A stretch of DNA of 64,000 nt from Monocercomonoides exilis PA203. Taxonomy: Eukaryota; Protista; Preaxostyla. The notes below the pieces were generated by a model. The model searched no databases, had not been told where the DNA came from, and saw only the letters and a list, made by a program, of their open reading frames with translations. Location of the stretch: assembly GCA_001643675.2 (NCBI GenBank), contig LSRY02000067.1, positions 186,001-250,000 of the forward strand. Reading direction: 5' to 3'. A program made the translations under genes and the position numbers. Shown here piece by piece: positions 1,273 to 64,000 of this stretch. Every line of letters begins with the position of its first letter. Position 1 is the stretch's first letter.

Positions 1273-1549
1273 TTATTTATCTGAATTAATCAAATTCTCA
1301 ATAATTTTACGTTGCAGACATTGTTCATAACTAAATAGCCCATTTTGCATCGTAACGATGCTTTAATAAAAGTTATTGACAACTCGAAACAACTTTTTTT
1401 TAAGAAAATTTCCCACTATAAAATAATCATCTTCTTTTCAATAAATTATTTGCAATAAATAGAAATATATCAAAAAAAGTTCAATGAACTGGAACATCCC
1501 AAAAAGTGTTCTGACTGAACCCATATTTATTTAGTCGTTTGACCGTTAA

Positions 1550-4500
1550 ATGTCTGAATCAGTTACTGTTGCTTTAAGAGTTCGTCCTTTAAATTCAAAG
1601 GAGAAAAAAGAGAAATGCACAGAAATACAAACTATTTCTGGAAAGTCGATTACCGTTGTAAACCCAAAGGAGTTTTGAATATTTTCTTAATTAAACATTC
1701 AATTTTATTTTTTTTAAAGTAAATCAAAGAAAACTTTCACATTTGATTACGTGTATGGAACAAAGACTACGCAAGACGTTTGAGAACTCTTTTTTTCATC
1801 GGATTTTTTTATTAATGAGAAAATATATATTTTTAAAATTTCAGCAAGTTTTCAATGATCTTGGGAAATTGTATTTGGAAAACTGCTGGAATGGATTTAA
1901 CTGTACATTGTTTGCATATGGACAAACAGGAGCAGGAAAATCTTATTCTATGACAGGCTCAAATGATTCACCCGATACACGAGGTATTATTCCTCGTGGC
2001 TGCGAAGAAATGTTTCGTAGAATTGAAGCAAACGATAACCCTGACGTTTCATATGAAGTTAAGGTATTTGCACTGGGCAATCTGTTTTTGTCTCGGATTT
2101 TGAACCTTTTTGCTTTAGGTTTCTTTCCTCGAATTATACAACGAAAAACTTCAAGATTTGCTTGATCCAAAAAGCAATAAAAACATAAAAATTCGAGAAT
2201 CACCATCAAAAGGAGTTTATGTGGAAAATGTTGTTGAAGAGCTTGTTGAAAGTTATAAGGAAATTGAGGAAGTTCTGGAAGAAGGAGAAAAATCTCGAAC
2301 TGTTGCAGCTACAAACATGAACGCAACCAGTTCAAGATCTCATTCCGTTTTGACCATTTTCTTCACTCGTAATGAGGCATGAATAAATTAGAGATTGTTT
2401 ATTTTTTTTATACTTTTTAATGACTCTTTTCTTATTCAGGTTATCGAAGGGAAGAAGACCCAAAAAGATTCCAGAATAAATCTTGTAGATCTTGCTGGAA
2501 GTGAACGTCAGGCTAAAACAGGAGCAACTGGACAAAGATTGGCTGAAGCAAACGCAATCAACAAAAGTCTTTCAGGTGTGTTTTGATACTCAATTATTCA
2601 ATTTTTAATTTTAAATGATAACTAATTTATTTGTATTTGACCAATTCCATAATATTCTTTTTGAATGTTATTAAAAAATATCTTTAAATGCATTGCCTTC
2701 TTCAGCTCTTGGAAATGTGATAACAGCGCTTGCCAACCAAGCCAAGGGTAAAAACGTGTTTGTGCCTTATAGAGACTCAATCTTGACAAGAATGCTTCAA
2801 GATTCACTTGGAGGTAACAGCAAAACCATTATGATTGCTGCTATGTCGCCTGCATCCACAAACTATGATGAAGGTTTGAGAAAATTATTGATATTTGAAA
2901 ATTAAAAAAAAAATGTTATTTTCTATTCATTTTTTTATTTATATTTTAATGTTTGATTTTGAAAAATTCTATCAAACTTCTAAAAAAATTCACTTTATCG
3001 TGTAAATCTAACCCACATCCATAATTCTCATATCTTCTTCATTTTATTCCACAAACATAAACAGGTGTCTCAACACTTCAATACGCTGATCGTGCCAAGC
3101 AGATCAAGAACACACCAGTTGTCAATGAAAGTGAAAGCGACAAGCTCATCAAGGAATTGAGAGCACAAATCGAAGAACTCCAGCAGCAGCTGAGTGGAAA
3201 CGGAGGTGCTGCACAAGGCGGAGGTTTGATTATCTTAACAATGAGGAGGGATTTTTTTGTATTGCTTTTATAATAATTTTTGTCAATATGCTTTAATGAA
3301 ATTATATTTAATCTTTATGCTTTTAATTCCTTTTATTGTAATATTTAATAATTTTCCTCTAAAACATTGTTTTTTCTTTCTTTTTCTACTCCATCACTTC
3401 AGCTGTTGAATTAACAGCCGAAGAGAAAGAAGAAGCCGCAAAATTAGAAGCCGAACGCGCTGCCCTTGAAAAGAACAAGGAAGAAACCCAACAAATGGAA
3501 GAAGCACTCGAAGCCCAGCGTTTGGCGTTTGAGAAAGAGAAAGAAGCACTGAGGAAGAAAGCAGAAGAGGAAGGCAACCAAATGACCGAAGAAAGCTTAA
3601 TGAAGGCGATGGAAGACAAATTACAGGAGCTGGCGAAGCAGCAGGAAGAAATGAACGAGAAGAAGAAGAGAGAGGCAGAAGCAACTGAACAGCTGCTGGT
3701 GAAGGAGAATGAAATGAAAGCGATCCAAGAACAAAAAGAGCAGGCGGCAAGTGATCTTGCCATTGCCATGAGCCAACTGCAGAGCATGACGCAGTCGATG
3801 GAGGAGAAGAAGGCAAAAGCACAGGAGATGCACAAGAAGAGACAGAGCTACTTGCAAGACATGGGGCTTTCGACTTCTGAGATCGCCGAGATGATGGGGC
3901 TGAGCAAAGGCGCTCCACAACTGAGAAACTTGTCATTCTCACCTGATATGGCGGGTGGGCTTGTGTTCTATTTGAAGCCAGGTGCGACGATTGTGGGGAG
4001 CGATTCACAGAAAGCAGACATTGTAAGCAAAGGATTAGGGATTTTGGACGTGCACGCGAAGCTGATGCTGGATGAGGAGAAAAAAACAGTCACATTGACG
4101 CTTCCTGAGGAAACGCTGGCAAAAGGCGGGAAAGTTGTGGTGAATGGAAAAATTGTGAGCGAAAGAATGACAGCAATTGAACCAGGCGATCGTATTATAT
4201 TCGGGAGGAATTTCATGACCCGTCTGTATTACGATGACAAAGCACCGATTAAGCCACTTGGAGTGGATGCAGAAGAGTCAACAGAGATTATGCAGGCAGA
4301 GCTGGCAGTGGCGAATGGGAAGGCTTCATCAGCTGAGGAGTATCTGAAGAAGCAGCAGACGATTGGGTGGTTGATGCATGCCGATGATGTGATTGACGAG
4401 GCGAATGAGATTGCACAAACACTCCAGAGGAAGATCACATACGGAATGGACATTGTGGAGGAGAAGAAGACGGTTGTGGTGAAGGTGAATTCATTCGAAG

Positions 4501-5924
4501 AGTCAGCCACACAGGAATGGACGTTGGACGAATTGGAGAATGAGAAGCTGCCTCAGATGCGTCTTGTTCTGAAGGATTACTTGGAGAACGGTGTAGTTCT
4601 TGACCCACCAGCCATTGATCCGTTCTTTGAGCCGCCACAAGATGAGAAAATTGGTGAATGTGGAATGACAATGGCGCGGCTGTTTGTGGATGGGATGACA
4701 GAAAAAACACTTGTGATGCGAAGAGAAGTGGAGGATGAAGAGCTGGATGCACTGGACAATACTGACGTTCCTGATACTGATGCTTCTTCTTCTTCTTCTT
4801 CTTCAGATAGCAATGCAACTGAAGAGGAAAAGATGAAAGTGAGGGCAAAAGGGATAGAATATGGGCGTGTGGAAGTAGCAATGCAGCTGCGGATGAGGAA
4901 AGCGTCTGTTCCAAGCACCAAAAACCCGAAGAAGCTTGTTAAACAGCCGATTATTGCGATCCCCAGGAAGGAGAAGACGGAGCAGATGGAAGAGGAAATA
5001 AAATCGAAGACAGAAATTCCTTCTTCTTCCTCTTCCTCTTCTTCCTCTTCCACTTCTTCAACAGTTTCTGGTGCTACTTCTGTGACAAATGCACCGAAGA
5101 CGAACAAAGCTGGCGGAGGGAAAAGCAAGAGCACCAAAAATGAAGGCAAAAAGGAAGAAAAAGGAGAAAAAGGAGAAGAGAAGACGAATAACAGCTCTAA
5201 TAACAAGAAGAAGAGCGAAGAAGGAGATGATTCCGTGTCATCATCCACAACACACGATGCAGTTGATTTAGAAGCAGTTATTGGCAACACACTTGTTCTG
5301 ACGATTGATGTGAAAGGAATGCAATTGTCACCATTTGTGCAGACAACAAGCGGAGTGTTTATGCGCTTCCAATCACCATTGGAAACAGAAGTGATCACAA
5401 AAAGAACAGAAATTGCAGAGGAGGTTGAGGTGCAGCTGAACAAGCTGGAGAAGATGAAGGCGATGCAAGAGGAAGAGAAAGCTGATCAAATCGAGAAGAC
5501 GAAGGAAAGTGAATGCACAGGTGATTCAAACACACAAAAAGCCGAGCAAACTGAAGAAGCAAGTGAAAAACTGAAGAGAAAGAGGACGGTGAAGAAGTAC
5601 AAGTACTCCAATTCGGAAGCTTCATACACTTTTGAGATTGCAAATGTGACGAAGAAGGACATTGAGCATCTGTCTTCTCTTTCAATCGTGTTTGAGGTTG
5701 TGGGCCATGCCTCGTCGCACAAACAGCCTTCGACAGAAGAAACAGCCAAGCTGGTTGCACTGAGGCAGAAGACGGCGAAGAAGAGGGCGGAGAAGAAGAA
5801 GGCTGAGGTGGAGTTGAAGGAAAGGGAGGAAGAGTTGAAGAAGATGAAGGAAGAGATGGATGCACTTGCTAGTAAAGTGTCAGAACTCGAAAAAAGCGAA
5901 TCGTCAAGTTGCGTCATCCTATAA
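1550..5924 (+). CDS. Kinesin-3 family motor (KIF1/KIF13/KIF28-like) with FHA-like domain and C-terminal CaaX; 8 exons, ~1213 aa
   Basis: Exons 1550-1671, 1720-1777, 1845-2063, 2119-2376, 2440-2575, 2706-2873, 3065-3223, 3403-5924 splice in frame (3642 nt). Motifs [56 protein letters not shown]; coiled coil; FHA-like [14 protein letters not shown]...PGDRIIFG; ends SSSCVIL*. Confidence 0.93.
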
Positions 5925-7786: not shown

Positions 7787-10700
7787 GTGTCTGCATCTTT
7801 CTCTTTGCAAAATGCTTCGACACAAATATGTTTCACAACACTTGTGGTGGCAGGAAAAGGGTCCCTTGTCAGGGTCAGAGCGAATTCTTTTGTCAGTGCA
7901 TCGTCTTGTGCGATTGATGTTGTGAGAAAGGCAGAAGACTTGCCAATGCTCAGCTTTGATGGAAATGTGCAGCTGTGCAATGTTTCTTTCAATCTTCGTC
8001 AACGTGCTCAACACTTTCCGCTTTTGGCTTCTCCACTTTCGTACGAGCATTTGGAGCTGTCGAGTGAGCTTTCCATTGTGTCGTGCGCTTTTGCGGATTT
8101 TGTTCATTTGTCTGTGCCGTTTTTGCCTCCATCGATTGCCCATGTTTCTGTTGAAGGTGCAACTTTCAGGAATGTGTCGTCATCAGCACTGCATCCACGG
8201 CAGGCGCTTTGTGCATTTTCACAGGCATGCTCTTTCGAGAGCTGTTTGTTTGGATGTGTGCGTGATGCGTTTGATGGGGGAATTACGCAGTCAGTCAATT
8301 CTGAGCACGTGCCAAGGCTTCATTTTCTCAACAATTCGTTTTCACTGTGCCAACGCACTTCAAATGTCAATATCAACGGATCAGAGGGAAATCCACAAAG
8401 GCCCTCGAGGCAGACATCTCTAAGCTCTGGGATGAACGCATTTGCTTGGTGTGAATGGACAGACTCAACTGGAGATCGTGGAGGTGCAATTTCAATAAAA
8501 ACGAGCGCTGTGGAGTTAACTATTAATTTTTGCACATTCATCAGTTGCCATGCCAGTGAATACGGAGGTGCAATATATGCTGCTTCGAATTCATATTTGA
8601 GTGTGGCAAACAGTTCATTTGTCAAATGTGAGGCAACTTCATTCGATGGCGGAGGGCTTTATACGCAAAATATCAGTAATTTTTGTCTTGTTTCCAATTG
8701 TTTTTTTATGGAATGCAATTCCACATACAGTGGAGGAGGGCTTCATGTGAGGTTGCAAACTCCAATATCTTTTCGGGGAGAGGCAGAAAAAATCGAATAC
8801 ACTGTGATTAATAACTGTTCATTTGTGACCTGTTCTGTGGCAGAAAGAACTGGTGGTGGGCTTTGCTTTCGTCCTGCTCCAGATGTTCGCACAGTTTCCA
8901 AAAGCTGTATTTTTTACAAATGCACAGCTTCTTTTCAAGGGGGTGGATTGTCATTAGAACCACTTTTTGTTAAAGAAGGTTCTCAAAAATTATGTTCATT
9001 CTTTCTATTTCAGAAGTGTTCTTGTTCATCTTCCGATGCTCAAGGGCATGATGTTTTCATAGATGATCAAAAAGACAAAATTTCAGATTCTGCTTTATTT
9101 GAATGCTACACGTCTAATCCTTCTGAGCAGAGAGTGTGCTGGCGCACAAGTAATAATGAGTTTTCATGCAAAAAGGATTGTATTCTTGATGGATTGACTC
9201 TTTTTGCATGCTCAGGAGGATTGTTGGTGGAATATTGCGGATTGCAAAGATCTTCAGCCTGCAAGACCATTGACTACACACTGAACACACGTCTTGATGG
9301 AATGGCCTCATGCAAATTAGTCTTGCTGGAAAGTTCATTTGACCCGCAGTTTATAGAAGCTGCGAACAGAGATATTGTTATTTCTGGAGAAGACAAGAGG
9401 AACACAATTTTATCCACCACATCTGTATCAGGATCATCGCTGTTCGCAGCAGCGAATGGCCATTTGGAAGCAAGCACGTTTTCGATTGAGCATTCAAATG
9501 AGAGAAGAGATATTTCGTTGTTTGCCGTTTCCAGAGGGGGTGTTCTTGATATCAGTGAAATTTTGATTGCGCCATCAGCAGATCACACATTATCCACTCC
9601 TTATACTGCATCGCTGCTTGTTTCTGGAACAGGAGGGATTGCGACGCTTTCAGGCATTTCTGCTGAAGGGTTCTTCCTTTCGGGAGTTTAGGTATTTTCG
9701 TTTGACTCGTCAGCAGTGCCCGAAAATGAGGAGCAGAAGCTGACACTGGATGCCTGCACCTTTTGTGAAGTAAAACGAAGTGGAGGGGAAGGAGGAGGGG
9801 TGATTGGGTGGCAGATGGGCAGACAAGACATCTTGGCAATCAACAACTGCACATTTAGGGATTGTGAGACAGGAAATGGGAGTGGAGGAGCAATCAACAT
9901 TGAAGCAAGCGCGACGAGCGAGGTGAGAATCGGAAATGAATCAAACACTTTGTTTGAAAGTTGTTTGGCATCAGAAAAGCCAGCTGCACAAGGGAAAGGC
10001 GGAGGCATATTTCTTTGTATTGGCTCAGAACCTTCTGGAATATTGCTGAAAGAGCTGAGCTTTGTGAGCTGCCGTGCTTGGAAAGGAAGCAAGTTTTTTA
10101 TGGATGTTCCGGACATTCACACAACATTGGTGAGTGATTGCTTGCAGTTCGAGATACCACAGGGGGAGCAGACAGAAGAGGAGTTTATGGGATTTGAGGG
10201 AGGAAATCGCAATTACCCGATTCCTTTGTATTTTTATCTTGTGGATGTGACTTTACTGACATATATTGGCGGAGACAATAACTTTGACTTTGATGTGTGT
10301 GGATATCGCAACTATCCATGCAGCACAACCGCGTTTGCGGCATCAAAGCGATCAGACTTTGCGAAGCAGACTTTTGTCCTGAAATGCGGGTTTCTATGGA
10401 AGGAATATCTGGTTTTGAAAGATTCTGAATGGAACATATATTGCGAAGCTGCGTCGACAGAAATAGAAATTGGAGTGGAAGAGGCAAAAGAGAGCAGCAG
10501 TTTGGTGACGACAATGGCGAAGACGTTGATGAGCAATATTTCGTTTGTTATTCCATCGAGTTTGGGATCGTGCACCGAATCGCTGATGAAATGCACTCAA
10601 TCAGAACTATCCTTGGAAAACTGCTCGTTCTTTGCGAATGCGAATTCCAACAGCAAAATTGAATTTTGTGTGATGCGTGGGGTTGGAGGAAAAATCAGCC

Positions 10701-13700
10701 TTGAAGGAGTAACATTTAAGGACTTATCTTTGGAAATGAAGCAGCTCTTGGATTTTGATGCAAGAGGTGGAGCCAAGATTGAACTGAAGATGGTCTCTTG
10801 CCATTTTGAAAACACAACAACAAATCTGGAGTCTGGGTTGGTGCAAATCAGAAACATTGGGAAGTTGTCTGTTGGTAATTCGGCATTCTGCATGAGTGAA
10901 GAGCCAGCATGTGCGCTTTTTGAAGTGAGTGGAGTGAGTGTGTTGAATCTGGAGAACAGCACATTTTCAAGGGTGAGCAGAGGCGCAGGGTGTGGAGGAG
11001 TGATTGCTGGGAGAGTTTGTGAAGGAGATTTGATGAACGTCAGCGATTGTTCGTTTCTGTCAAACAACATCACAGAAGGAGGGATTAAAGGCGGGAGCTT
11101 GTTTGTTGCTGTGGAAAGCAGCGGGTCATTTGTTTTTGACAACAACGCGGTTTCAGAGAGCAAAGTCAGTGCAGAAAATGGGTTTGGGGGAGGACTGTTT
11201 GTGACACTGGAAGAGACAAATTGTGTGTATTCATTGAAGAAAATTGTGTTTTCGGAGAATGGAGCACAGAAGGGCCGAAACCTCTTTCTTGTGTGCCCAA
11301 CACCACGATTTGTTGTTGAGCCTGGTTTATTTGCAGGGTCAGCGGAAAAGGAAATGGGCGAGGCAGACATGTGGGTGTTTGACGATGTGAGCACACACAA
11401 AGTGGATGAGTCAATGAGAAAATATCTGTTTGTGTATGATGAGCAGACGATGTATGTTGACACCGAGCTTGGGACGAGGATGGAGAGGTGTGGGACAGAA
11501 GTGTTGCCTTGTCTGACGATGGATGAGGGTTTTGGGAATATGGCAGCCGTTCAGACGAGAATGTTCATTGTGAGATCGGTTGTTGTGGAAAGCGAGATCA
11601 AGCGAATTGGCTTGTCGCTGAGGATACAAGGCTGCGAAGAGAAGTCTGCGCTTTCTGTGAAGGAAAACAGCCACTTTGAGCAGACAAATGGAGCAAATGA
11701 TCTGTGCATTGTGTTCAGCAAGATATTGTTTGAGCTGCCTGGGGTGTCAAACAACCCAGAATTGATAACTATTGGCTGTGGAAAGTTGGATATCATTGAT
11801 TGCATTTTTGATGGCTTTTCAGAGGCTGTGCCTGTGCTTGTGACAAATTTGTTGATTATTCACTCGACAGGAGGGTCAGTGCATGTGGATGGGACAGAAA
11901 TGAATAGTCTGCAGTTTGAAGGGAATGGAGGATTGTGCTGTGCACAAGGGGGCTCTCTTTTGATGGAGAAGACAAATGTGAGGGGAATCAATGCGACAAA
12001 GTCAGGAGTCATCAAAGTGGAGCGAATGAATTCAATAATTTTGTCAACTGTTTCGTTCGAGGAGTGCGCTTCCGCTGTTTGCAGCAATGTGGAAGTTGCT
12101 GACTGTTTGAAAGCGGAAATTAATAATTGCACTATTAAAGGATGCATCGGGGAGGAAGGAGATGGTGGGTTTATGAGTTGTATGATGGAAGGAAGAGACG
12201 AGCTGAAGATCTTCAACTCGAGCATGAATGGTTGTAATGCAAAGGAAGATGGCGCAAAGGGAGGGGGAATGTTCCTCGATTTTTCGGATGATTCAGAGAA
12301 TTGCTATTTGCTGGAAAAGGTGTCATTTGAGTCGAATGTAGCAGCTATTGGAAAGAACATTTTCATGAAAGCTTCGGACTTGAATGTAACAGTGAAGAAT
12401 GGTGCTTTTGATTTTGAGTATTCTTCGATGAAAGATGATGAGAACGCTTTTGTGGGGAGTGACTTGGTGTTTGAAGAAGTCAGTTTGTTTGTATTTCTGA
12501 TTGAGTATTCGAGCTGGTCAGTTTACATATCGAGCACTGGCCACGATGTTGCTGGGTGCGGAAGCGAGATAATTCCATGCGGCACGTTTTGGAAGGGTGT
12601 TGAACATGCTGACAATTCTGGGCAAGTTGGAGAAATGATTATTGAAGGAACAGCAGAATTGCAGGAGAGCTACGATCTCTCAGGCTTTGTTGTGAGAAGC
12701 GAGCAGGATGAGGAAGCGGAGATGAAGCACGGGATTCTGCTGTTCAAGAACAAAATAGCGGAAGATGGCAAGGCGTATTTTGGGAATGAAAAGCAGCTTT
12801 CGTTTCGGATGATGAACTTCACGATTGATGGCAGTGCGAATGGAAGGATGCTGCTCATAGAAAGTGGCAAGGGATCGATTTGCATAACGCTTTGTTCGCT
12901 TCTTTCGATTGCAGCTTCGTCGTCACTGTGCAAAGATATCATGTTTCTTCACATGAAATCGGGGAGTCTGAATGTGTCAGGGCTGTATATTGAGGTGAGT
13001 CGGATGAAAAGCAATGTGATGGATGTGGCGAGCATCTGCCAGTGCGACATTGTTAATGTGAATGTGTTCGGCATCGTGATGGAGGATGGTTCGGTGATTG
13101 CGATGGAAGAACCCCTGCAGAGCGAAGGAAATCGAGAGAGTTATCTGAAGTTGAGGGACTCATCAATCCAACGAGTGACACGACTGGCTGGTGGAGCGAG
13201 TGTGCTAACTGTACCGACAACGTTGACGACTGATGTGGAGATTAACAACAGCGTGCTTGAAGTGTGTGCAGCAGGTTCTTCAGCGAAAGGGGGAGCAGTG
13301 TTTGCTGACCTGAGCAAGGAAAGCATGATCCGAGTGGTGAATTCGAAGGTTATTCAGTGTGGATGCTCTGTGACGATGGGTCGAGGAGGGGGATTGTATC
13401 TGGCGCTGAAGTATTCAGGGGAGCTGGGAATGCTGTTTGAGAGGGACGAGTTTGACTCGAACAGCGGAAAGGAAGGGAGAGACATTTTCGTTGAGTGCTG
13501 GAATATCTCGAGACAGATCAACGAGACGCTGTTCAAGCTGGACTTGAGGGAGAGCGAATTTGTGCGATACAACGCGATATTTGGGGTTGACTCAGAAAGT
13601 TCAGAAGTAGTGGATCTGATGGATTTCATTTTGATTTACCAATCAGAGACGATTGTTGTTTCATCGATTGAATGGAAAGGAGGGAAGGATATCAAGAAAT

Positions 13701-16562
13701 GCGGGACTGCAAAAGATCCATGCTATTCGATTGAATATGGTGTGACGCATCTTGCAGCGAGCGATGATATGCGCATTCGTGTGGATGGAGCTGGGGAGAT
13801 AGGAAGTGAGTTGGATCTGAAAGATGTGTGTGCTGTTTCGAAATCAAAGAAACAGGCGAAAGTGTGGTTTTCTGGTTTGTCAGGGGGCAGTCGAAGTTGG
13901 GTGATAGAAGTACAGCAATTCGTTGAACTGGAGTTGCTGAGCTTTGAATTTGCTTCTTCTTTCCCATCGTCTCATCTGCATCTGATGAAGCTATGCTCAG
14001 GAAGTGTGTCCATTCAGACATGCTCATTCAGCCCGAAAGAAGGGATTGACTGTTCGAATGTGCCTTCTTTGCTGCTGTGCGAAACCGGGTTGTTGGAAAT
14101 TGATCGATTGCTTGTGAGCAACATGAAGCTGGATTCAATTATTGAATGCTCTGGGGGGTCTATTGTTGGAGAGCGGATCGAAGCAAACAACATCACTCTT
14201 ATCAGTGGCAGTGCTATCTGTGAAGCTAATTCTGCAAACCATCAAGAGAATGATCAAGAGAATGGTGATGGGGATGGCAGAAACATTTCAGTTTCTCTTT
14301 CGCAATTCTGCAACATCACTCAGACTTCTGAAAAACCATCTGTATTTTCTGTGAAATGCAAAGGAATTGCAGTGCGAATGTTGAATTGCTCTTATTCGAG
14401 CTGCAGCTCGTTGAAAAGAGCTGGCAGCATAATTTCTGTTTCGTCAAGCAAGGATTGCTGCGTGGAATCGTGTGTTCTGAGTGGTTTCACATCCAATGAA
14501 GAATTGGAGTCTGCAAATACGATATACGAAGAATTGTGCAAATGGAATGGATCTGTTGTTGATTTTGGCAACACGTCAGCACATGTCAGATACACGACGA
14601 TTGGGAATGCTTCAAGTGGAGGGATGACGATTTATGGAGGGAACACCACAATCCAGAAAGGAGAGTTTACTGGCAACGGTGCGTCTATTACGGAATATCG
14701 GTCAGCACGAAGGAACATTGCATGCAGTGGGAATGGCACACTGAATGTTGTCAGTCTGAAAGGAGGAGATGGAGTGAAAGACAACACCTCACTGTGGATT
14801 CTGGATGGAGGATGCGCTTTGTCTGGAATAGCTGGAGAGCGGGAATCTCCATTCTTCTTGCCAACACTCGATTCAGTGGCAGTTGAAGAAGAAGCAGGAG
14901 GGGGAAAAGAGAAAGCAATGCTGACATTCAAAGGAACCCTTCTTTTGCCTTGCAACCTTTTGTTCAGGATTGTTGTTGCAAGGAATGATTCAGAATTAGT
15001 TGAGACGTATCAGTTTCATCAAGAAGGATACATCAATGAGAGCACAGCAATCGGATTAATCTCATCATCAACTATTTCGAAGGCTTCGGAGGAATCATCT
15101 GTGGAATGTTTTGTCCTGTTTGGTAAGCCAGAAAAACCATGCTCCACGAATCATATTGTTCTAAAGAATAGAAGTGAGATTGAATCAAAAGGAGATGAAA
15201 GGATTGTTGAAAGTGGAAAAGAAGGAAAATCATCGAGTGCATTGATTGTGATTGTTATAATCATGGGCATCATATTGATAATAGTTCTTGTTGTGTCCTT
15301 TGTTCTGGCAGTTCGATGGAGAAAGGCAAAAGAAGAAACAAAAGATCTGAGAGAGATTGTGAATGATACGGTGAAGAAAGATCCGAAGGCATTTGAGATG
15401 GTGACGATGGAGATGTCTCCAGAGGAGCAGTGGAGAAGGGCAGAGAGAGAGGCAGAGAAGAAGAATGAAGAGAAGATCAAGAAGAGAGTGTATGAAAAAA
15501 AGTTTGGGACACTCGGAGTCATCAGAGCATTTGCTGAGTGAGAGCGGATCGACTGAATACATATTGGGGAGAGATTCAGACAAGATCCCAGATTGGGCAT
15601 TGGAAAAAGTTGAAGAAGAGACAAGAAAGCGAACTCCTTCACCTTCCATTTCATCCACTTCAACAACTGATTCAGATTCCACATTTGTTCGAGGAGAAGA
15701 TCTTTGCCCAACCACCTCGTCAATGTCGAATCTGGTGGATGCAATGGCCTGTTCTTCGCCTCATGAGAAGCTGATTGTGGATTTGAGGGATTCGCTGTTC
15801 ATGCTGTTGCACGGAAGGAATGAGAAGAAAGAGATGGCAATAGGCACTCTGCAGGAGAGAGAAGTGACAGCTGCCCAAATCCTGTTCTGGGTGGTCAATC
15901 TTGCGCTCCACCCCTTTGATGAAATGGAAAACAAACTCCAATCATTGGCTAGTCTGAGTCCTCACATTGTTCTATTCTCCGAACACATGGTGATCTGCAT
16001 TGTGATGCACTCTGACTTCTTGTCAGATGATTCGGATTCGTCTTCCATCTCTTCGTCAACCATTGTCACATCTGCCAGTGATAATGACGATGAAGATTCA
16101 CTTCCTTCATCTGCATTTGAGGATGAGGATTATTACAAAAAAGAATGCTTGAGGTGGATGGCACCGGAGCTGCAGATCAGCAAGAACATTGGTGCAACAA
16201 AAGAGTCGGTTTCATTCTCGATCGGGATGATGCTGTGGGAATGTCTGACACTCCAGATTCCGTTTGGAGAATATGAAGCAGTAACGGCTGGTGAGAAGAT
16301 AGTGAATGGGGAGAGGCCGCGGATGAGAGTGGGATGCAGTGCAGAGATGGAAGAAGTGATGGAAAAGTGCTTATCTCAACATAAAAATGAGCGGTCGACA
16401 CTTGCAGCGCTGAAGCGGGAGTTCATCCAGCGGTTTCCGAAGGGAGCAACGATTGTAACTGTTTCTGATGCGATTGATGTGGAGTATGCGAGCGAAGTGG
16501 AAAAGCGTGGAGGCAGCTCGAGTTGTGAATTGGTTTCTTGGTGGGAGAGCAATCAGGATTAG
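7787..16562 (+). pseudogene. Very large single-pass receptor-like protein: GGAI/Cys-rich beta-helix-like ectodomain, TM helix, degenerate kinase C-lobe; disrupted or mis-assembled
   Basis: ORFs 7787-9691 and 9716-15541 are in the same frame, separated by one TAG (9689-9691). Frameshift in the A-run at ~15495-15501 into ORF 15465-16562. Repeated GGAI/GGGL(F/Y) and CG...PC.T motifs; TM ALIVIVIIMGIILIIVLVVSFVLAV ~15240-15313; kinase remnants LRWMAPEL, FSIGMMLWECLTLQIPF. True start uncertain. Confidence 0.8.
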
Positions 16563-34744: not shown

Positions 34745-36059
34745 TTACAGAAGGTTCCTTTGGAAGTGTTGATAATACTGAATGCCACTCGTTTGAAAGC
34801 ACTCCGTTTTCCTTGAACGAAGAAACAACAGTTGCAGGAAGAAATGCTGTCTAAAGAGCTTGTGAGAGAACGTTGGAAATGGCCTCACGTTAAAGAGAAA
34901 TGGAAGAAACCGGAGACACAGAGTATAGAGAGTTGATGCATTTTTTGAAGACTGCAAACACACCACGATCATGAGGTTGTGTGATGTGTGAACTGTGTGG
35001 AATAAAAGTGACGACGTCAATGTTGTTATCAGTAAATTTCTGCCATACGTCAGGCTGAGCCCGAGATGAGTGAGAATTTAAAAGAAGAAGACATCTCTCA
35101 TTAATTTTCATTAATATTTTCCTTCTTTCGATGATTCCAGTTAATAAAACCTCTTCTGCGTATCTTTGAAATATGCTTTCCGTCATCCATCCATCGTTGT
35201 TATCCCAATCATCAATGAATGCGCTCAGAAGAACTCGCATTTCCTTTGGTAATTTGTGGCATGGCCACAACACAATGCTTTTGAGAGAATATCCATCTGC
35301 AGCAGCTGTTATAACCAAAGTGGCATTTGGCATGTTTGTGGGTGTTGTATGAAATACAGCTGGAACTCCTGTGGGGTGAATCACAAGAGTTTTGAAGGAA
35401 TCCGATAAGCGGAGTGAAGATTCATCGGTGTTAAAAATTAAAGAAGGTGAATAATGATGTGAATTGTGAAGATTTTGCAGAAGCTCGTAGAAAGGAAGAA
35501 GAGCTTGTTGATTGGATACTGAAAGACGTTGGATATCCACATTTCTGGGCATAGAAGCTTTGAGCTCAGAATTCCTTTTTGCAAATAGATATGGATATGA
35601 TTTGGACACACTGGTGGTTTCATCAACATCAGTTTCTGATCGTCTTTTTTTGTCGGAAAGGACGGATTCCATCTGAAAAATATTTATAATTATAAACGAA
35701 AGATAAATAAATGTGAAATCAAACTAATTCTCTTGTTCTCTTTGCATTTAAACTTGTTCCGGATAAACTTTCGATTTTAATAACTCCAACAATTATATTT
35801 TTGTCCTCTTCATTGAATAGTTCTGGCCTGCCAGGTGTTGCAACAGCTCTGCCGCTTTCAATTTCTGAAACTGCTTTGATAACTGCAGAAAGAGAGAATT
35901 CTTTGGTGTTTATTGTATCAAAAATTCGAACATTGCAATCAACAACAATTCGCAACATGCGTTCTTAACGATTTTCAATTCTTCAATATTCGAATAATAT
36001 CATTTTAGCTCAACGATTTAACTGACCTCATTCTTTTCAATTCTTCACAACATTTTCAT
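34745..36059 (-). pseudogene. pogo/Tc5-type (DDE_1, CENP-B-related) transposase with a 52-nt intron, decayed
   Basis: TPGRPELF, IFNTDESSL, ITAAADG, GWMTESIF, LLLLNSHSSR (catalytic D to N), SSHITQPHDRGVF; GT-AG intron 35673-35724 joins ORFs 35719-35958 and 34890-35672. Confidence 0.85.
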
Positions 36060-38210: not shown

Positions 38211-39010
38211 TTGAAAAGCAGAGGAGTGCAGGCCAGGTGGAGAAGCAAGCAAGACAGAAAATCTCTCAGCCAAGTGCAGTTCAGAGACGTAGAGTTGCTC
38301 CTCAACCAACAAAAAATCCAGGAATTCAAGATGATATTAGAAGAACAAATACGAACAGGAGTCATTATCCCGATGGAGCAGAAGGATGTGAAATACAGAA
38401 ACAATATCTTCCTCATTCAAAAGAAGTCAGGCAGCTGGAGACAAATTCTCGATTGTCGGAAACTAAATGCAGTGGTGAAAGGAACACATATCAAGTGCGA
38501 CGTAGAGAAAACAGTGGAACGACTAATAAGACTGAAAGATTACGCAGTATCCCTAGATTTGGAACAAGCTTATTATTTGATTCCAGTTTCAAGAGAACTT
38601 ATTCCCTATCTTGCTTTCAGATTCATGGGAAAAGACTGCTCCTTCAAAGGCATTCCATTCGGCTTTGTTGATGCACTACGCCTATTCACACACATAATGA
38701 GGAAGGTGACAGCGGAGATAAGAAGAAGATGTGATGTCAAAGTCGTTGCCTATTTGGACGATCTTCTTTTTCTTCGTGAAGATCAAGTCGAAAATAAATT
38801 GATTCGAAAACCTTCTTGTTTTTAGAAAGCCTTGGTCTTCTGATCAACAAAAAAAAATGCAACCTCATACCCAGTTCGCAGTTCAGCTTCCTGGGATACG
38901 AATGGAACACAACAAGCTTAGATGTGTGCCTAAAGGAAAAAAGAAAAAAGGCATTGCGAGAGCTGTGTCGCTAGTGGGAGAGAAGGTGTTTAAGAGACAA
39001 GACTGTCAGA
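38211..39010 (+). pseudogene. DIRS reverse transcriptase (5' part, interrupted by insertion)
   Basis: FLIQKKSGSWRQILDCRKLN, SLDLEQAYYLIP, FKGIPFG, VAYLDDLLF; frameshifts after ~38800. Confidence 0.9.
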
Positions 39011-42000
39011 GGCATAAGTCTAAATGCGCTCCTTTTGCAAATTGCGTTTTTGAACCCTCAAATTATGATGAATAAATAGATAATAATTATTTAAAAACTA
39101 TTTATGGACCGATTTTTCGAAAAAAATTTTTCTTTTTGAAAATAATGATTATTGAAAAATGACCCATAAAAACATGAAATTATTAAAAAATAAACAAAAT
39201 TATCAGTAAATATGGATTTTTGCCCATCAGAACGGTTTGCATTATTATATAGACTTATTTTATTTGTAAGCTTTCATCAAAAAAATATAAATCACAAACA
39301 AAAATTTTATTAAATATCTTTGATCCAACCCACAATAAAATTTTTAATATTTGGAAAAATTGAATATGCTGTTTTCGGTTAATAAGAATTCAATAGTTTG
39401 CTATCCTTTCATTTTTGTATGTAAATTTAAGTATATTATTATATGTGCACTTGTTTTATATTGAAAACAGCTTTTATTTAAAATCAAGAGAACTTGTTGA
39501 TATGCGCTTTATTTTTAAGAAGCAACAGGAGATACATTTCAATAATGATGGTAATGTATTGAAAAAGTTTTGTTTAAACTCTGACTGAATAAAAATTGTT
39601 CAATTTAATTGAAACTTTGAAAAACTGACATTCTCTTTCATTTTTTATCTTTCATTTTTGAACTCTGCATGATTAAAACATTAAGAAAGGAATTATTAAA
39701 ATATGTTTCAGCAAAGAAGTTATTAATTAATCTATCGTTTAGAAATGTTTATATTTCATTCATTGAAAAGTGATTTTTGAATTTGTTCTTTGTTTACTTG
39801 ATCCTAGTGTCACGGATGATGATAAAAATATGTAGTGGAATAATTATAATTTGCAAGCAAAGTGAATAAATAATTGATAGAAAAATATTGAAACTGCTTT
39901 AGAAATTATAAAGATCATATCTTTTTCACAAATAATATATTCATTTCATTCTTTAAATTGTTTTATAAACATCAAACAATAATTACTAAGATGCAAATAA
40001 AGATGTGTTTCCTTTAAACAAACGAAAACATACAATATAATGTGAACAACAAGAAAATTTGAAAATTATTGTTGCAATAAAGTGAAAAAGTCCTAATAAA
40101 TATTGAAAAATGTTTTTGCTTTCATCCACACATTTCATCCCCTCGTTGTTATTCCTTCTTCATGTGAATTAGAGATTGCAAAATCTTTCATCAAAACAGA
40201 ACTGTTAACAATATCCACAAGAGATTCATCCCATTTGTACATCTCTTCCTTTATCCTCATTTACATGCTTTCCTTCTTTTTCTTCTCCTTCCTTTCCATC
40301 AAACGCACATTATCCAATCAGCACATCCACGCACTAACATATCCTTATCATCCTTCCTCTCTTGTTTGTGCACTTGCATTGAGCAAAAGAGCAGTTCAGC
40401 ACATTCAACACCCTTTCAGCTCCATCCATCTTCATCACGCTTCCTTCAATAGCCACTGAAATATTCTCAAACTTCACTTCCTTCATCTCTGTTTTCGCTT
40501 TTCCCCCAACTCTCACAACTTCCCCCTCACACTCGATATTCAACATTCTGGTTTCAACAATTGACACACCCAATTCTCCACAGAATGACAGAAGTGGCAC
40601 AGATGAATGAATTCCACTGAACAGCGTTTCGCTCATCTTCAGCTCTCCACTCTCCACATCAAGAATCATCCTCTCCATCACAAGATCCATTGCAGACGAG
40701 CTGAAAAAGCATTCTGAAATTTCCAATCTCTCATCCTTCTCTTTCAAAACACTCTCTTCAACCCCTTCAAATTCCTCTCCAAACACAAACAAACACCTCT
40801 CCACAACACACTCATTCACAAACACAATCACACTTCCTTCACTTCCCATCTCTTGAATGGCTTCATTGAAATGAATTGTTCCCTTCGCCTTCTTTATTGA
40901 CTTCACGCACAAATCTCCAACAACGCACTCCCCTCCAATGTCTCCTTCTCCATCAATCAGAATCATTTTCACAACACTTCGTCAGATGTGTTGCACACCA
41001 TTTCCAATGCTCTCACACTGATTGCTCTGTGCTCCACACTGCCTGCTGTCACTCCCATTCACACACACAAACACCTGTGAAGAATAATAGAATGTGATCA
41101 GCGGAATCAGATCAACATCATCCCTTTCCTTGTCTGACCCACATATCGAGTTCTCCTCCTTCAGTACCTCCTGGCTGAAGTCCAGTCCAGATAGTCTTTC
41201 ATTCAACTGTAACTTAATTGAGTTACACCGAATGAACACATCCTTCCCCACAAACGCATCATTCATCATGAATCGGATATACTCCAGTTTCACCCCAAGA
41301 GCTGGCATTTCCTTTTCGACTGATTTAGCATTCGGATCAATTGCATCAATCATCGCCCCTCCTCCTCTTCCATCTTCAGTTGAGCACATACACATCACAA
41401 ATGAGCATCCTCTCACTTTCAATTCTGATTCCCCTCTCTTCAAACACGCCTTTATCCCTCCTCCTTCTTTGCTCTTCTCACTTATGCACTTCGTCAGCAC
41501 ACACCCTTCGATCTCACATTCCATCCCAGATGAAAATGATCCAACATTCATCACGCATGCTCTGTTTTCTGAACATGTGATATATGTGAACGAGGAGTCG
41601 TTCACCCTCACGATTTTTTTTGTTTTCTGTTGCTTTATCGATCAACATGTTTGACAGCAACGGCTGACTCAGCGAAATTAAACTGCTTCTTGAGAATGTT
41701 GTGTTCGAAACAGACACATTCATCACATCAATCACTTCCACTTCAGGGACAAACTCTAAAACCCCTTTGGCCAGATTGAAGAGAGAAATGGTGCAATCCT
41801 CAACCACCACACTCCCTCCATCTGCTTTTATCAAGCAATAAATCACTTTCATTATTTCATCCTCGCATACAAAAGAGCATCTCACAACTGAAAGTGTTGC
41901 AGAGGAGAATGATAATGAATGAATGAATGATAAATGATTCCCTAATTCATTTGGAAGAGAAAATGAAATATTGATGAATGAACCAATAACATTCGATGCT

Positions 42001-44345
42001 ATCATTCCCCCTTCTCTTCCTTCACCTTTATTCCTTCCACCCTCACTCACTTTCAGATCTGTTCCTTCTCTCTCTCCCTCAATTGACACAACTGGAGTTA
42101 TTGATAATAATTTTGATGATAAAAATGAAATAGATTTTTGAAGAGACCCTGATCCAACAATCTTGATGTGCGATTCGCCTTTTCCAAGTGGTTCATATCT
42201 CAGCGATATCAAGTGATCAATTGATGAGCATGGTGCTTCTGAATATCCACATCCACTAAAGTCTCCTCCATTTTCCTTCGAAACGAACACATTCCTACTC
42301 CAATTATCCCACAGATAAACAACCAGTGGAATCACATATCCATTTTCTCCTGTTGTCTTCCTTTCCCATCCACACAGCTCATCCAATAACTTCTCATCAC
42401 TTGCACTCAACTCCTCTTTCAGTTGTTCGTTCGAAATAACCTCGTCCAGCTCATTTCCTGATTTGAACACTTTCTTCCCTTTCCAAGCATTGCACTGGCT
42501 GAATGTCACTCCTTCCATCTTAAATGATCACATTGCATCTGCCAAACTCACAAACATCCCTCCTCCCATTCCTCTTCCTTTCTGCAAGTTGTCCTCTGTT
42601 GGCACCTGGAATCCTGTGAATGCTACGCTTTTAATCTCCAAACTTCCACTCTCCCCGACCGATATCATCATCCCTCCTCCTTTCATCCCACTTCCTCCTG
42701 TACATATTGATGAAAAACTGCAGTTATTCACTACTGCGCTTCCTTCTGCTTGTATCTCTGCACCGATGCATCCTCCTCCTTCTCCGCTCCCACCTTCCAC
42801 CGTCACTCCACTCACTCTGCCGTTCTTTTTGTCCAACTTCTCTTCATTGGTTATTGTTATTGGTGATTTGCCGTTCATCGTCAGCGTCACTCCACCCTCC
42901 ATCACAAATTTATCAACAATCAGTTCTCCTTCATTAATCTTCAATCCTGCTTCAGATTTCTTGATTGATAAAACGCATCCTCTGGTTTCATTCAACGAAT
43001 CCACTCTAACATTCACCAGATGGCAAATGACTCCAACATCATGAATGACAAATATACTGTTTCCAACATTACATGAATCCATCGAGAAATCATTCACTTC
43101 CACGCTGCCTCCAATCACATCCACAAATACACAATCAAATCCATTGTTCACTTCTGCTTCTGAATGAAATGAACATTCACTTACCACCAAATCTCCATTT
43201 TTGCTCGAAATAATCGATTTGGCTGAGTTGTCAAATCCAGATGCCAGTTGCAGTTGGATATTCCTCAATTCGAGGTGAATTTCATTTTCCATGAAATATT
43301 CCAATTGACTTCCAATTTCCTTTTCAAAATTCAAAGTTGTTTTCAAATTCTCTTCTCCAATCTTCACACTTTTTTTAATCTGATAATTGGACAAGTTGAA
43401 TGAATCTTGAATAACTGTGGATCCTTCAGTCTCAATTGTTTTCTTTCCAGTCCCCTTTTCCATGTTTTCCATCCGCTTCAGCATTGTTTGGCATAGCTCA
43501 TCCTCACATCTACAGCTCTCAACATCAGATCCACTAGAAAAGCTATATCAATCTCATTCTTTATATTTTTGAAAACATACAAACAACAAACTTTAATAAA
43601 GTCCATTGTTTTAATAACTCAACATAATATTGCATTGAAAAATTGAAGTTTATCTGGGTAAAAAGTTTCATTTAATAATGCAATGATCTTATCTAATTCA
43701 AAAAAAACATAGAAATATAAAAGAACAAGAAAATATAAGAAATATTAAAGCAAAATAAATAATATTGTTATTTAAAGAGTCTTCTATAACCTTTTGCGTT
43801 CCTTTGCGAACGTAAATGAACTAATATTAGGTAGTTTAAAATATTCAAGCAAAAAGGTACACTTTAATGTGACTGTGAAAAAAAGCTGTTTTCAATATAA
43901 AACAAGTGCACATATAATAATATACTTAAATTTACATACAAAAATGAAAGGATAGCAAACTATTGAATTCTTATTAACCGAAAACAGCATATTCAATTTT
44001 TCCAAATATTAAAAATTTTATTGTGGGTTGGATCAAAGATATTTAATAAAATTTTTGTTTGTGATTTATATTTTTTTGATGAAAGCTTACAAATAAAATA
44101 AGTCTATATAATAATGCAAACCGTTCTGATGGGCAAAAATCCATATTTACTGATAATTTTGTTTATTTTTTAATAATTTCATGTTTTTATGGGTCATTTT
44201 TCAATAATCATTATTTTCAAAAAGAAAAATTTTTTTCGAAAAATCGGTCCATAAATAGTTTTTAAATAATTATTATCTATTTATTCATCATAATTTGAGG
44301 GTTCAAAAACGCAATTTGCAAAAGGAGCGCATTTAGACTTATGCC
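39011..44345. mobile_element. Pack-type non-autonomous TIR transposon (Merlin/MULE-like): 465-bp TIRs, 8-bp TSD CTGTCAGA, host gene cargo
   Basis: TIRs 39011-39475 and 43881-44345 (ggcataagtctaaatgcgc.../...gcgcatttagacttatgcc); ctgtcaga at 39003-39010 and 44346-44353; no transposase motifs seen inside. Confidence 0.92.
40105..43545 (-). pseudogene. Captured internal fragment of a GGAI/Cys-rich surface-protein paralogue
   Basis: ORF pieces 42528-43484, 41514-42518, 40982-41611, 40334-40972 share motifs with the 9716-15541 protein (CNAWKGKKVF, GGDFSGCGYSEAPCSS, GKDVFIRC, DLIPLITFY, KWDESLVD); no start, TM or kinase. Confidence 0.85.
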
Positions 44346-45550
44346 CTGTCAGAGTGAAGGATTTGGCATCGTTCGTAGTAGAACTCAGTTCAACACGCTT
44401 TGTTCTTCCAGACGCATCTTTGCACCTCCAAACTATCTACAAATTGTTGCGGAAAGGAATTTTAACAAACGGATGGGATGGAATGATGAGGCTGAATGCG
44501 TCAATCCTCCAACAGATAAGAAGATGGAGATGGACATTGAGGAAGAACCCCGGACGCAGACTCACACCAGTGTTTATTCCAGAAGACGGACCAACCACAT
44601 ATGCATTACAATTCTCCTGGGGAGTGACCCTCAGAATAAACAAAATGTCACTTGATTGTCACAGTTGTTTTCCATTCGCCGTGAAAAACCAATCATCCAA
44701 CTTCAGAGAATTAAAAGCTGTGGAACTTGCCCTTATTTATTTTGCACCAATCCTTTCAGAAAGTCGGATATCACAGTAACAACTTCGGTCTGACAATTCG
44801 GCAGTCGTTTTCAACGTGAACAAACGGAATGCAGGAAAGAATCTTCGCCCGACACTCAAAAGGATATAAACATTGAAGGAGAAATTGAAAATAGTCCTGA
44901 AAGCAGTTCATCTCCCCGGATTACAGAACACAAGAGCCGACGTATTGAACACCCTGGAAAGAGCAGGATACCACAGAATGATAGAAGATGAACTCTTTCA
45001 GATTCTTGCAGCGCTTAAAGTAACTCCAACGCCGGACGCCTTTGCAGCTCAACACAACCACAAGGTCGAGAGTTGGTGCGAAATAGGAAGTCCATTGGGA
45101 GAAGACGGTCTAGAATATCCATGGAAGAACGAGTGCGTTCTGGCACACCCCCCAGTTCCACTGATTCCAATGACGATTCGGAAGGCACAGAAGGAGAGAG
45201 TACCTGTAGTATTACTCCTGTCGAACTGGAATGGGCAGAACTGGGATGTGTTATTGGAGAAGACACATCATCGGACATTCGAATGGAGGAGTCTGAGAAC
45301 AGTTCTGAGAATGGGGCTTACAATGACAAACACATGTGCATGTCTCTCTCCAGGCAGGTTGAAAGTAATATTGATCAATCCACCAGAGAGAAAGGCGAGA
45401 GCTGGTGGAGAAGGGCGTTGGAGGAAAGAGCTTTCCCAGTTTCACTGGCAGAGGAATGCAGATCAGGAATTGCTCAGTCGACGTGGGATGGATATTTATT
45501 CGGTTTCGCGCATTTTGGAGAACAGTGGGAAAATAGTGATATGGACATAA
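44346..45550 (+). pseudogene. DIRS RT C-terminus, RNase H and adenine methyltransferase-like domain
   Basis: VRVKDLASFV continues the RT across the TSD; SSNFRELKAV, RSDNSAVV, AVHLPGLQNTRADVL; MT-like PDAFAAQHNHK..DGLEYPW..LAHPPVPLI. Confidence 0.85.
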
Positions 45551-46308
45551 TTCCAGAGGATATTCATGAATGGGCTGCTCGATGTTTGAGTATTTTCATT
45601 ACACTCAAAGACAATGGAATGAAACTGTCATGTTTGCAACTTATCCGCTCAGCGGTTTCATACTTCACAAGCTTGGTTTTCAACACAAATTTGTGGGATA
45701 TTCCAAAAATAAAAATATTGTTCAGAGGGTTTAGAAGAACGGATAGGACAAGAAAGAAGAAGATTCAAGAAATCTGAAATCCGAAGACCATTTTGAAATA
45801 TTTTTCTAGTCTTGGAGAAAATCAGACCTTGAGCTTCAAACATCTGACAATGAAAGCCATTGTGCTCACAATGTTATTCACTGCATGCAGGTTTACAGAG
45901 TTGGAAAGAGTAGACATGGAACGATCCAGATTCGAGCATGAAGGAATATTCCTGGACACAAGGCAAAAAACATCGCTTAATGGAACAGAGATTGCCGTTC
46001 CTTTTTTAAACGAAAACCCGACAATTTGCCCATCTTCGGCCATTCAGGTTTTGTGGGAAGAAATACAGAAAAGAAGACCAGATGGAAAGAAATTGTTTTT
46101 AAATACAGAAACATTTCATCCTTTTTCAGTAGAAGGAATCAGACGATTGGCAAAAGAGACGTTGAAAAAAGCAGGAATACCAAGCCATTTCACTCCTTAT
46201 TCAATAAAGGCTGCAACACTTTCAACGCAAACGATGTCGAGAATACTCCCCACTCAGATTGCGAAGTTTACCCGCCTATCCCCTAGAACAGACAATTTAG
46301 CGAAGTAA
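45073..46308 (+). pseudogene. DIRS tyrosine recombinase
   Basis: AQSTWDGY, IRSAVSY, MLFTACRFTEL, ICPSSAI, FTPYSIKAATLS; in-frame stop at 45775-45777. Confidence 0.85.
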
Positions 46309-63400: not shown

Positions 63401-64000
63401 GCGGTGTTAACGAAGGAGAAGAACACATCAGAGTGAATTGGTGAGTGTGTGGGTGTGTTATAAAAAGAAGGCGCGCGTTTTGATGAGTGAGGGAGTTGAG
63501 AAAGAGGCAGCAGAGACAAGGGTGGAGTCGTGAGATAGAAAGCAGAGAGGAAGAAGAGAGAGGAAAATGAATTGTTTGTGTGATTGAACTGAGGCATGGC
63601 TCACTGGCGTCAAAGGAAGTTTTCACAGAGGAAGCTGAAGAAGATGTAAATAAAGATGTTGCTGTTGGGTTTGGAAAAATAGAAGCAGAACTTGATGATG
63701 ATGAAAAGAAAGAAGATTCATTTAAAGTCATTTCAAATGTTGTTGTTTGAGCATTTGCTGCTTGATAAATCTGTTTGTTTTTGTGGAAATACGGATGAAT
63801 AGCGATTGTGGGGACGATCATTCCTCCTCTCTCTTTCCTCTCCCGCTCTTCTTCTGCCCTTTCTTCTTCAAAGTCATCCAAGTCCAAAATGTCGTATCGA
63901 GTGCCTGAAACATCATAGCTCAGTTCGTTGAGCCTTCCTTCTCCCCCAAAAGACGATGCAGAAACCGGAGAATGGCGCACCAGCGAAGAACGAGGCGATG
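60423..64000 (-). CDS. Fragmented low-complexity hypothetical gene(s), begins beyond the window end
   Basis: Series of S/E/K-rich minus-strand ORFs (63216-63980, 62360-62749, 60423-60731) with frameshifts or introns; no domain recognised. Confidence 0.35.

Follow-up and report, generated by a model that had tools for sequence, protein, structure and literature searches.

Introduction

Merlin is a small and little-studied superfamily of DNA transposons, reportedly described by Feschotte in 2004, whose members are presented as single-gene elements with short terminal inverted repeats (TIRs). The Pack-MULEs and other Pack-type elements of plants, reportedly described by Jiang et al. in 2004, are said to carry host gene fragments between their TIRs. 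Foldback-type transposons, among them Galileo (P superfamily, Drosophila), have long arms, and in the ampliconic palindromes of the human Y chromosome gene conversion takes place between the arms. Here we describe an element of 5,335 bp located at positions 39011-44345 of a 64,000-nt stretch of the genome of Monocercomonoides exilis PA203 (assembly GCA_001643675.2, contig LSRY02000067.1, positions 186,001 to 250,000; the window from here on), which we read, with a probability of around 90%, as a non-autonomous internal-deletion derivative of a gene-bearing Merlin family of this protist. Like a Pack-MULE, it has TIRs but no transposase, encloses part of a host gene, moves as a single unit and exists in several copies; unlike Pack-MULEs, it belongs to another superfamily, its cargo is common to the autonomous copies instead of resulting from many independent captures by non-autonomous shells, and in the full elements this cargo lies within the inverted arms. 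The resemblance to Galileo and to the Y palindromes lies in kilobase-long arms that are near-identical within a copy (99.8-100%) versus 82-85% between copies, but here part of a protein-coding host gene lies in the arms, and the superfamily is Merlin.

Merlin elements are defined by a DDE domain of the IS1595 type, target-site duplications (TSDs) of 8 bp and 5'-GG ends (PMC8101967), and more than 100 copies in at least seven families have been published from Monocercomonoides sp. PA203, all with 8-bp TSDs and with TIRs of 23-29 bp (Lopes et al. 2021, PMC8101967). The family described here shares with them the DDE_Tnp_IS1595 transposase, the 8-bp TSD and the 5'-GG termini. By contrast, its TIRs measure 465 bp in short copies and reach 4-7 kb in full ones, the longest Merlin TIR cited being of 462 bp (PMC8101967); a host-derived gene is present in each arm, whereas the published M. 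exilis elements are single-gene (PMC8101967); and its transposase has an N-terminal CxxC...CxxC motif, whereas Merlin is said to be without the IS1595 zinc-finger domain (PMC8101967). That paper makes no mention of carried genes, long arms or non-autonomous forms, and no description of a gene-bearing, long-armed Merlin was found in the literature open to search. An initial annotation of the window, made from its letters alone, had been aware of no description of the system in this lineage, which does not stand for Merlin itself, already published in Monocercomonoides (PMC8101967), and stands for the gene carriage and the long arms, which are not in that paper. A Merlin lineage in which the uptake of a host gene has extended the arms to 4-7 kb, and which transposes as a whole, gives rise to deletion derivatives and maintains the identity of its arms, would represent a new structural variant. 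It also offers a concrete, testable connection of mobile DNA with the gene family that is largest in M. exilis. The window copy itself is an ordinary dead derivative.

The window element is a genuine insertion in a DIRS-like retroelement

A repeat search of the window revealed a single standout inverted pair, formed by arms at 39011-39486 and 43870-44345 (476 nt, 99% identity). The outer 465 nt of these arms, corresponding to the left TIR (39011-39475, plus strand, with similarity extending to 39486) and the right TIR (43881-44345, minus strand), are 100% identical. The left terminus is GGCATAAGTCTAAATGCGCTCC, the GGC...GCC ends read GGCATAAG...CTTATGCC, and the terminal letters are GGCATAAGTC... 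on the left and ...GACTTATGCC on the right. The element is bordered by an exact 8-bp TSD, CTGTCAGA, at 39003-39010 and at 44346-44353.

The surrounding sequence is a DIRS-like retroelement interrupted by the insertion (38211-46308 from reverse transcriptase to recombinase, plus strand). Its reverse transcriptase lies at 38211-38825 (RVT_1, E 1.5e-16) and, on the same strand but around 7.6 kb beyond, across the insertion, a tyrosine recombinase is encoded at 45793-46308 (Phage_integrase, E 2.2e-6), in such a way that the gene set typical of DIRS elements (a reverse transcriptase plus a tyrosine recombinase in place of a DDE integrase) is present; the family is multicopy. For an empty-site test, the left 300 bp, with the 8-mer at its end, and the right 300 bp, with the 8-mer at its start, were searched separately against the genome (82,301,135 bases in 101 contigs). 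Each flank matched around 26 other copies of the surrounding retroelement at 80-91% identity, and in every one of them both matches adjoin with an overlap of exactly 8 bp, that is, the site is uninterrupted and holds a single copy of the 8-mer (for example, C1:63889-64192 / 63597-63896 and C21:547853-548156 / 548149-548448). As the flank matches are contiguous with this overlap in the paralogous copies, a single insertion accounts for the 5,335 bp and one 8-mer, and their removal closes the frame of the host retroelement, joining ...RDKTVR to VKDLASFV.... The initial annotation had reported arms identical by eye over 465 bp, GGC...GCC ends, an exact 8-bp TSD, a DIRS element as the target and the movement of the whole 5.3 kb as a unit with restoration of the DIRS reading, and all of this is borne out by the alignments, the domain matches on one strand, the empty sites and the closed frame.

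Perfectly identical arms in a repeat-dense region of an assembly based on Oxford Nanopore (ONT) reads (PMC8767320) could also be the product of an assembly artefact or of a local inverted duplication. Such an origin is extremely improbable given the exact TSD and the empty sites, the existence elsewhere in the genome of a copy with 97% identity and another TSD, the presence of TSDs in 15 of 22 family copies and the fact that the gene model at this locus was already in the earlier 454-based annotation.

The element belongs to a Merlin family that encodes an IS1595-type transposase

The genome-wide TIR search and the arm pairing that the initial annotation had proposed were run with the 465-bp arm as query. 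As 143 candidate end matches were found, the TIR is not confined to the window; 40 of them were scored, and the arms pair in inverted orientation at distances of 1.7-20 kb. The left TIR of the window copy and the ends of at least 40 scored copies share 82-85% identity. TSDs and cargos, whose cataloguing had also been proposed, were compared in 22 copies: a perfect 8-bp TSD was found in 14 and one with 7 of the 8 positions in another, the TSDs being without common sequence, and most copies carry the same gene (72-86% nucleotide identity), in some cases as deletion forms of it. In copies of 1.7 kb the gene is absent and TSDs are still present. Both ends of nearly every copy examined begin with GGCATA(A/G)GT..., one right end being ...TGCA. 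A sister copy, L031 (C16:864977-870308), is 96.9% identical to the window copy but was inserted at a site unrelated to it, where it has a TSD of its own, GACTGTCA. A segmental duplication of the window locus was considered for this sister copy and rejected: the flanks do not align, the TSD differs and the site is the 3' end of the recombinase open reading frame (ORF) of another DIRS copy. The exact terminal 22-mer of the window copy was found only in these two elements, and a version with one mismatch ends a larger copy, E10a, and around ten others.

Three large copies are informative on the complete organisation of the family: E10a (C16:1369301-1379912, 10,612 bp, TSD CTCATAGA), E10b (C13:173742-184510, 10,769 bp, TSD CGAATATT) and E20 (C16:997450-1017897, L039+L049+L040+L050, 20.4 kb, no TSD). 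At the centre of E10b (L048:5221-6681:-) there is an open frame of 487 codons with a DDE_Tnp_IS1595 match (E 1.7e-21), and the same transposase gene is present in E10a and E20; the domain was also detected at L037:5450-6496:- (E 1.8e-23) and in a fragment in L040 (E 4.2e-12). The D/D/E blocks of the protein read EMDET, YSDKWSAY and TIESMWS. N-terminal to the DDE domain there is a CxxC-x18-CxxC motif (L048:6400-6560), a region that in Pfam gives only a weak Elf1-type zinc-ribbon match (E 0.003) and that is not assigned to the IS1595 zinc-finger domain. A genome search with the transposase gave at least 740 candidate matches at 27-100% identity, of which three or four (100, 94 and 82%) are of this lineage.

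Relatives with the same ends thus encode an IS1595-type DDE transposase, the TSD is of 8 bp and the termini are 5'-GG, and on these sequence features the family is assigned to the Merlin superfamily (IS1595-like DDE). From the alternative "Merlin or MULE" left by the initial annotation, the first part is retained and the second is not: assignments to MULE or hAT were rejected by the DDE_Tnp_IS1595 match, and in place of a Mutator-type partner with TSDs of 9-11 bp an IS1595-type transposase and an 8-bp TSD were found. No match to the family transposase was detected by tblastn in the whole 64-kb window (best E = 5.8), in agreement with the earlier statement that the interior is free of transposase motifs, and the window copy is therefore a non-autonomous member.

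E20 deserves a separate comment. Its 7.2-kb arms each include a copy of the transposase, and its 6-kb centre holds a second Merlin transposase (around 52% identical; DDE_Tnp_IS1595 E 9.7e-18) together with a receptor fragment comprising a transmembrane (TM) segment, the juxtamembrane region and part of the kinase domain. E20 looks like a composite element.

The window copy as an internal-deletion derivative

The inverted arms of the large copies measure 3,978 bp in E10a, 4,426 bp in E10b and 7,172 bp in E20, with identities of 99.8-99.9% between the arms of a copy, and every one of these arms contains the cargo gene with the same start and stop. The full member is built as an end, a receptor-fragment gene, the transposase, the receptor-fragment gene again in inverted orientation and the other end, an arrangement that gives arms of 4-7 kb. 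When the window copy is compared with such members, the identity to most other copies is 72-78% in the interior (element positions 1035-3920). The right 1.26 kb (positions 4079-5335) aligns with the first 1.26 kb of other copies at 76-78%, and at 86% with that of E10a. Positions 1035-1479 match E10a at 79%, and positions ~757-1093 correspond (61-63%) to a region of E10a, E10b and E20 that precedes the transposase gene and extends slightly into its 5' end. The window copy consists in this way of one full arm, which extends around 340 bp past the 3' end of the gene and is there joined to some 280 bp without a match and to the left end of 476 bp. In window coordinates, the spacer at 39487-40333 (minus strand) comprises, by alignment to E10a, E10b and E20, sequence 3' of the gene and what remains of the stretch that immediately precedes the transposase start, and it holds the deletion junction; the carried gene occupies 40334-43484 (minus strand); and the subterminal region 5' of it (43485-43880, minus strand) is part of the 1.26-kb end block of the family and likely its promoter region. 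One complete arm (the end block plus the gene) has thus been retained together with 465-476 bp of the other, and the transposase has been lost.

The retention of one full arm, along with the lack of any transposase trace in the window, supports an internal-deletion derivative and not a shell that made its own capture. The latter had been the proposal of the initial annotation, a Pack-type element in which a piece of a host gene was picked up by the non-autonomous shell itself (MULE or Merlin), so that the cargo would be private to its lineage. The description fits as far as a transposase-less TIR element with a fragment of a host-family gene goes; moreover, the amount of interior sequence varies among the family copies, and the 20-kb copy carries a second host fragment (the one with the TM segment and part of the kinase domain). 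But the same cargo, with the same start and stop, is carried by the transposase-bearing partners in each of their arms and by most other copies, and the interior differences are deletions of one gene and not different cargos: codons ~458-670 are absent from two copies (L032/L033) and codons ~211-688 from two others (L043/L045). The transposase, in addition, is of the IS1595/Merlin type and not of the MuDR type, and the TSD is of 8 bp. Capture by this element is thus contradicted, and a Pack-type origin is very unlikely.

For an internal-deletion derivative, mobilisation would take place in trans: a Merlin transposase supplied by a related copy would bind the shared ends and cut them, and the excised element would be pasted into a staggered cut of 8 bp, giving rise to the 8-bp duplication, the last such move being the landing in the DIRS-like retroelement. 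Recognition of the ends by such a transposase is suggested by their similarity (82-85% over 465 bp) and by a terminal 22-mer that is one mismatch from that of E10a.

Several observations weigh against the reading of the window copy as a deletion derivative of a mobile, gene-bearing Merlin family with a dead cargo. The catalogue covers 40 scored ends out of the 143 candidates and 22 examined copies, 7 of them without TSD. The search for an autonomous copy with the same ends, also suggested in the initial annotation, yielded transposase-bearing relatives but none, among the copies examined, with exactly the window-type terminus: E10a, the closest of them, has an in-frame TGA in the transposase, and the fully open transposase, that of E10b, belongs to the other end type. 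As regards the cargo, the public gene model for the window copy, MONOS_13946 (= P0003, 971 aa), skips its breaks with short introns, and the ratio of non-synonymous to synonymous substitution rates (dN/dS) of 0.35-0.5, with a full ORF in some copies, makes a function of the cargo in the family possible.

The carried gene is a β-helix ectodomain segment of a receptor-kinase-like family

The gene carried by the family has around 1,070 codons. In the window copy it runs from a conserved ATG at 43484 (MLKRMENMEK..., the MEN start being common to other copies) to the usual stop at 40334-40336, so that its length is 3.15 kb (43484-40334), and neither the 3.4 kb nor the lack of a start described in the initial annotation is maintained. 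A relationship to the receptor family found at 7.8-16.6 kb of the window, also put forward there, is well supported, the match to the ORF at 9716-15541 being of 25% over 750 aa (E 2e-32). This giant receptor (7787-16562, plus strand) is laid out in three consecutive ORFs of 634, 1,941 and 365 codons; its ectodomain is of the β-helix type, its TM segment falls near residue 1,840 of the middle ORF and its tail is of the PK_Tyr_Ser-Thr type.

All 80 database relatives of the cargo are M. exilis proteins, many of them with a tyrosine or Ser-Thr kinase domain, and M. exilis MONOS_17547 has the same sequence (100% identity) as an intact relative of the cargo. With the intact cargo as query, more than 2,850 candidate loci were found in the genome; the best matches outside transposons are open frames of ~2,000-3,100 codons, most of them of ~2,700, at 61-75% identity. 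In the host gene models, the end of the cargo falls around 255 residues before the TM segment, and the cargo itself shows no hydrophobic (TM) segment, as noted at the outset, no signal-like N-terminus and no kinase. Without signal peptide or TM segment, its product could not act as the parent receptor. A Pfam search with the cargo gave no match, and the β-helix is seen only through a fold search: the AF2 model of MONOS_17547 (55 paralogs; pLDDT 81.8) is made almost entirely of short β-strands, and the top Foldseek matches are all right-handed β-helices (tailspikes, PL6 and pectate lyases, pectin methylesterases and Ag43). These data show that the cargo is a host-derived β-helix ectodomain segment of the receptor tyrosine-kinase-like family. 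The tyrosine-kinase-like family is the largest in M. exilis and overlaps with 28.9 Mb of "unclassified repeats" (PMC6759080, PMC8767320).

The carried gene of the window copy is a probable pseudogene

When compared with intact copies, the gene in the window is broken at three points: a stop at 42528-42530, a 32-nt gap plus a frameshift within 41514-41611 and another stop at 40982-40984. All three are common to the sister copy L031 and, as this copy is at a separate locus with its own TSD, at least one of the two insertions took place when the gene was already dead. The carried gene of the window copy is read as a pseudogene. An alternative genetic code or real introns were considered as explanations for the breaks and rejected, because intact relatives read straight through and the breaks are common to the sister copy. 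Since intact copies read through the same codons, the introns of MONOS_13946 are taken as modelling artefacts, and this model and that of the sister copy, MONOS_7956 (671 aa), are probably pseudogenes annotated as genes. Together with MONOS_17547 and MONOS_3978, these "uncharacterized protein" models are transposon cargo, some of them probably pseudogenes with false introns.

In other members of the family, the cargo might be a working accessory gene kept by selection, for instance as a cytosolic β-helix protein, and lost only in the window copy. In this regard, its start and stop positions are conserved, stop-free ORFs of 1,071-1,074 codons exist at C1:1038803 and in E20, where an uninterrupted ORF of 1,072 codons is found in both arms, despite these sequences being only ~60-75% identical, and one version is annotated as a gene (MONOS_17547). 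The dN/dS of 0.35-0.5 between lineages, compared with 0.64 between the window and sister copies, points in the same direction. Nevertheless, the gene is broken in E10b, the copy with an intact transposase (stops at codons 136 and 270 in both arms), as well as in E10a, L032, L041, L043 and the window and sister copies, and copies with a broken gene or with no gene at all have still transposed, in such a way that the cargo in cis is dispensable for movement. The lack of signal peptide and TM segment argues against any receptor action, and both the low dN/dS and the open frames could be imported by gene conversion from selected host paralogs. A selected accessory gene is on balance unlikely, and a cargo carried along without need for it by a Merlin family is preferred.

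Arm homogenisation and ectopic gene conversion

Within the 465-bp arm, seven sites differ between the window and the sister copies, and all seven have the same state in both arms of each element; no arm-private site was found within these 465 bp, and past position 465 the arms differ alike in both elements. As all seven substitutions are paired, they were copied from arm to arm, a process that would keep both arms identical and that could proceed by intramolecular conversion or by repair on a fold-back structure.

Differences between the two elements are far from evenly spread, as 97 of the 166 are concentrated in three patches inside the gene, over a background of around 1.3%. In the patch at 40230-40600 the sister copy is 99.2% identical to E20, located 130 kb away in the same contig, whereas the window copy is 90.8% identical to it. 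These patches indicate that the carried gene exchanges segments with its paralogs by ectopic gene conversion. A donor search for another patch, 42830-43230, gave no near-identical donor, the best other matches being at 88-91%. The same positions coincide with a module of ~300 nt near the 5' end of the cargo that has 86-91% nucleotide identity to hundreds of host receptor genes; conservation elsewhere in the gene is far lower, and the module would be a likely hot spot for ectopic exchange.

Exchange with host genes is suggested by the affinities of different cargos. Codons ~335-650 of the window copy are closest to host genes on C20, C34 and C12 (70-72%), compared with 61-67% to other transposon copies and 57% to the host genes on C5, and the cargo of E20 is closest to the C5 genes (72-75%), with 69-70% to those on C20. 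In a four-point comparison, 28+25 is much smaller than 43+30, which groups the window copy with C20 and E20 with C5 whatever the rates, the E20 figures spanning a longer stretch; segment-wise best matches agree with these mosaic affinities. According to the identity tables and the four-point argument, which take here the place of a tree, the transposon-borne genes appear to be non-monophyletic. Conversion from selected host genes alone can keep dN/dS low and the frames open.

It could be further proposed that the Merlin family, as it holds an ectodomain segment of 3 kb in numerous copies that are dispersed, mobile and inverted, serves the receptor kinases, a family of more than 2,000 members, as a shuttle and a partner in recombination, with ectodomain patches passing both ways by conversion. 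If so, the transposon would help to diversify or spread the largest gene family of an organism in which around a third of the assembly is "unclassified repeat" overlapping with these kinases. The initial annotation had already suggested that the system could shuffle the surface-protein family: patchy conversion and mosaic host affinities agree with this, but the flow with support so far is from host to transposon and from transposon to transposon only, the reverse one, from transposon to host, not being shown. A two-way shuttle is quite improbable.

Target sites and neighbouring features

The window and sister copies occupy non-homologous positions in two DIRS copies, yet the same 11-mer, AAGACTGTCAG, is present at both targets (window 38999-39010 / 44346-44356; L031:490-500 / 5833-5845), with the 8-bp duplication shifted by 2 bp. 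This 11-mer occurs 52 times in 82 Mb (38 for the control), and no such motif was found in the other family TSDs. It may reflect a target preference of the subfamily. Conversion or microhomology insertion were rejected as its source, as the junction sequences do not fit with them.

Two virtually identical inverted pairs were found in the family: L032 (C1:817245-822642) with L033 (C1:847013-852408), and L043 (C91:1485393-1489650) with L045 (C91:1434072-1438329). The partners are 30-50 kb apart and show 0 and around 1 difference, respectively, in the aligned codons of the gene; a perfect TSD borders one partner of each pair and is absent from its counterpart. In another copy, L055 (C49:550012-554300), the 15-bp flanks are mutually reverse-complementary (atgaaagatctctga / tcagagatctttcat) and not a direct duplication, so this copy seems to be centred in a larger palindrome.

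The window also contains another DNA transposon, represented by a 260-codon ORF at 34890-35672 (minus strand) with a DDE_1 endonuclease domain of the pogo/Tigger type (E 9e-15).

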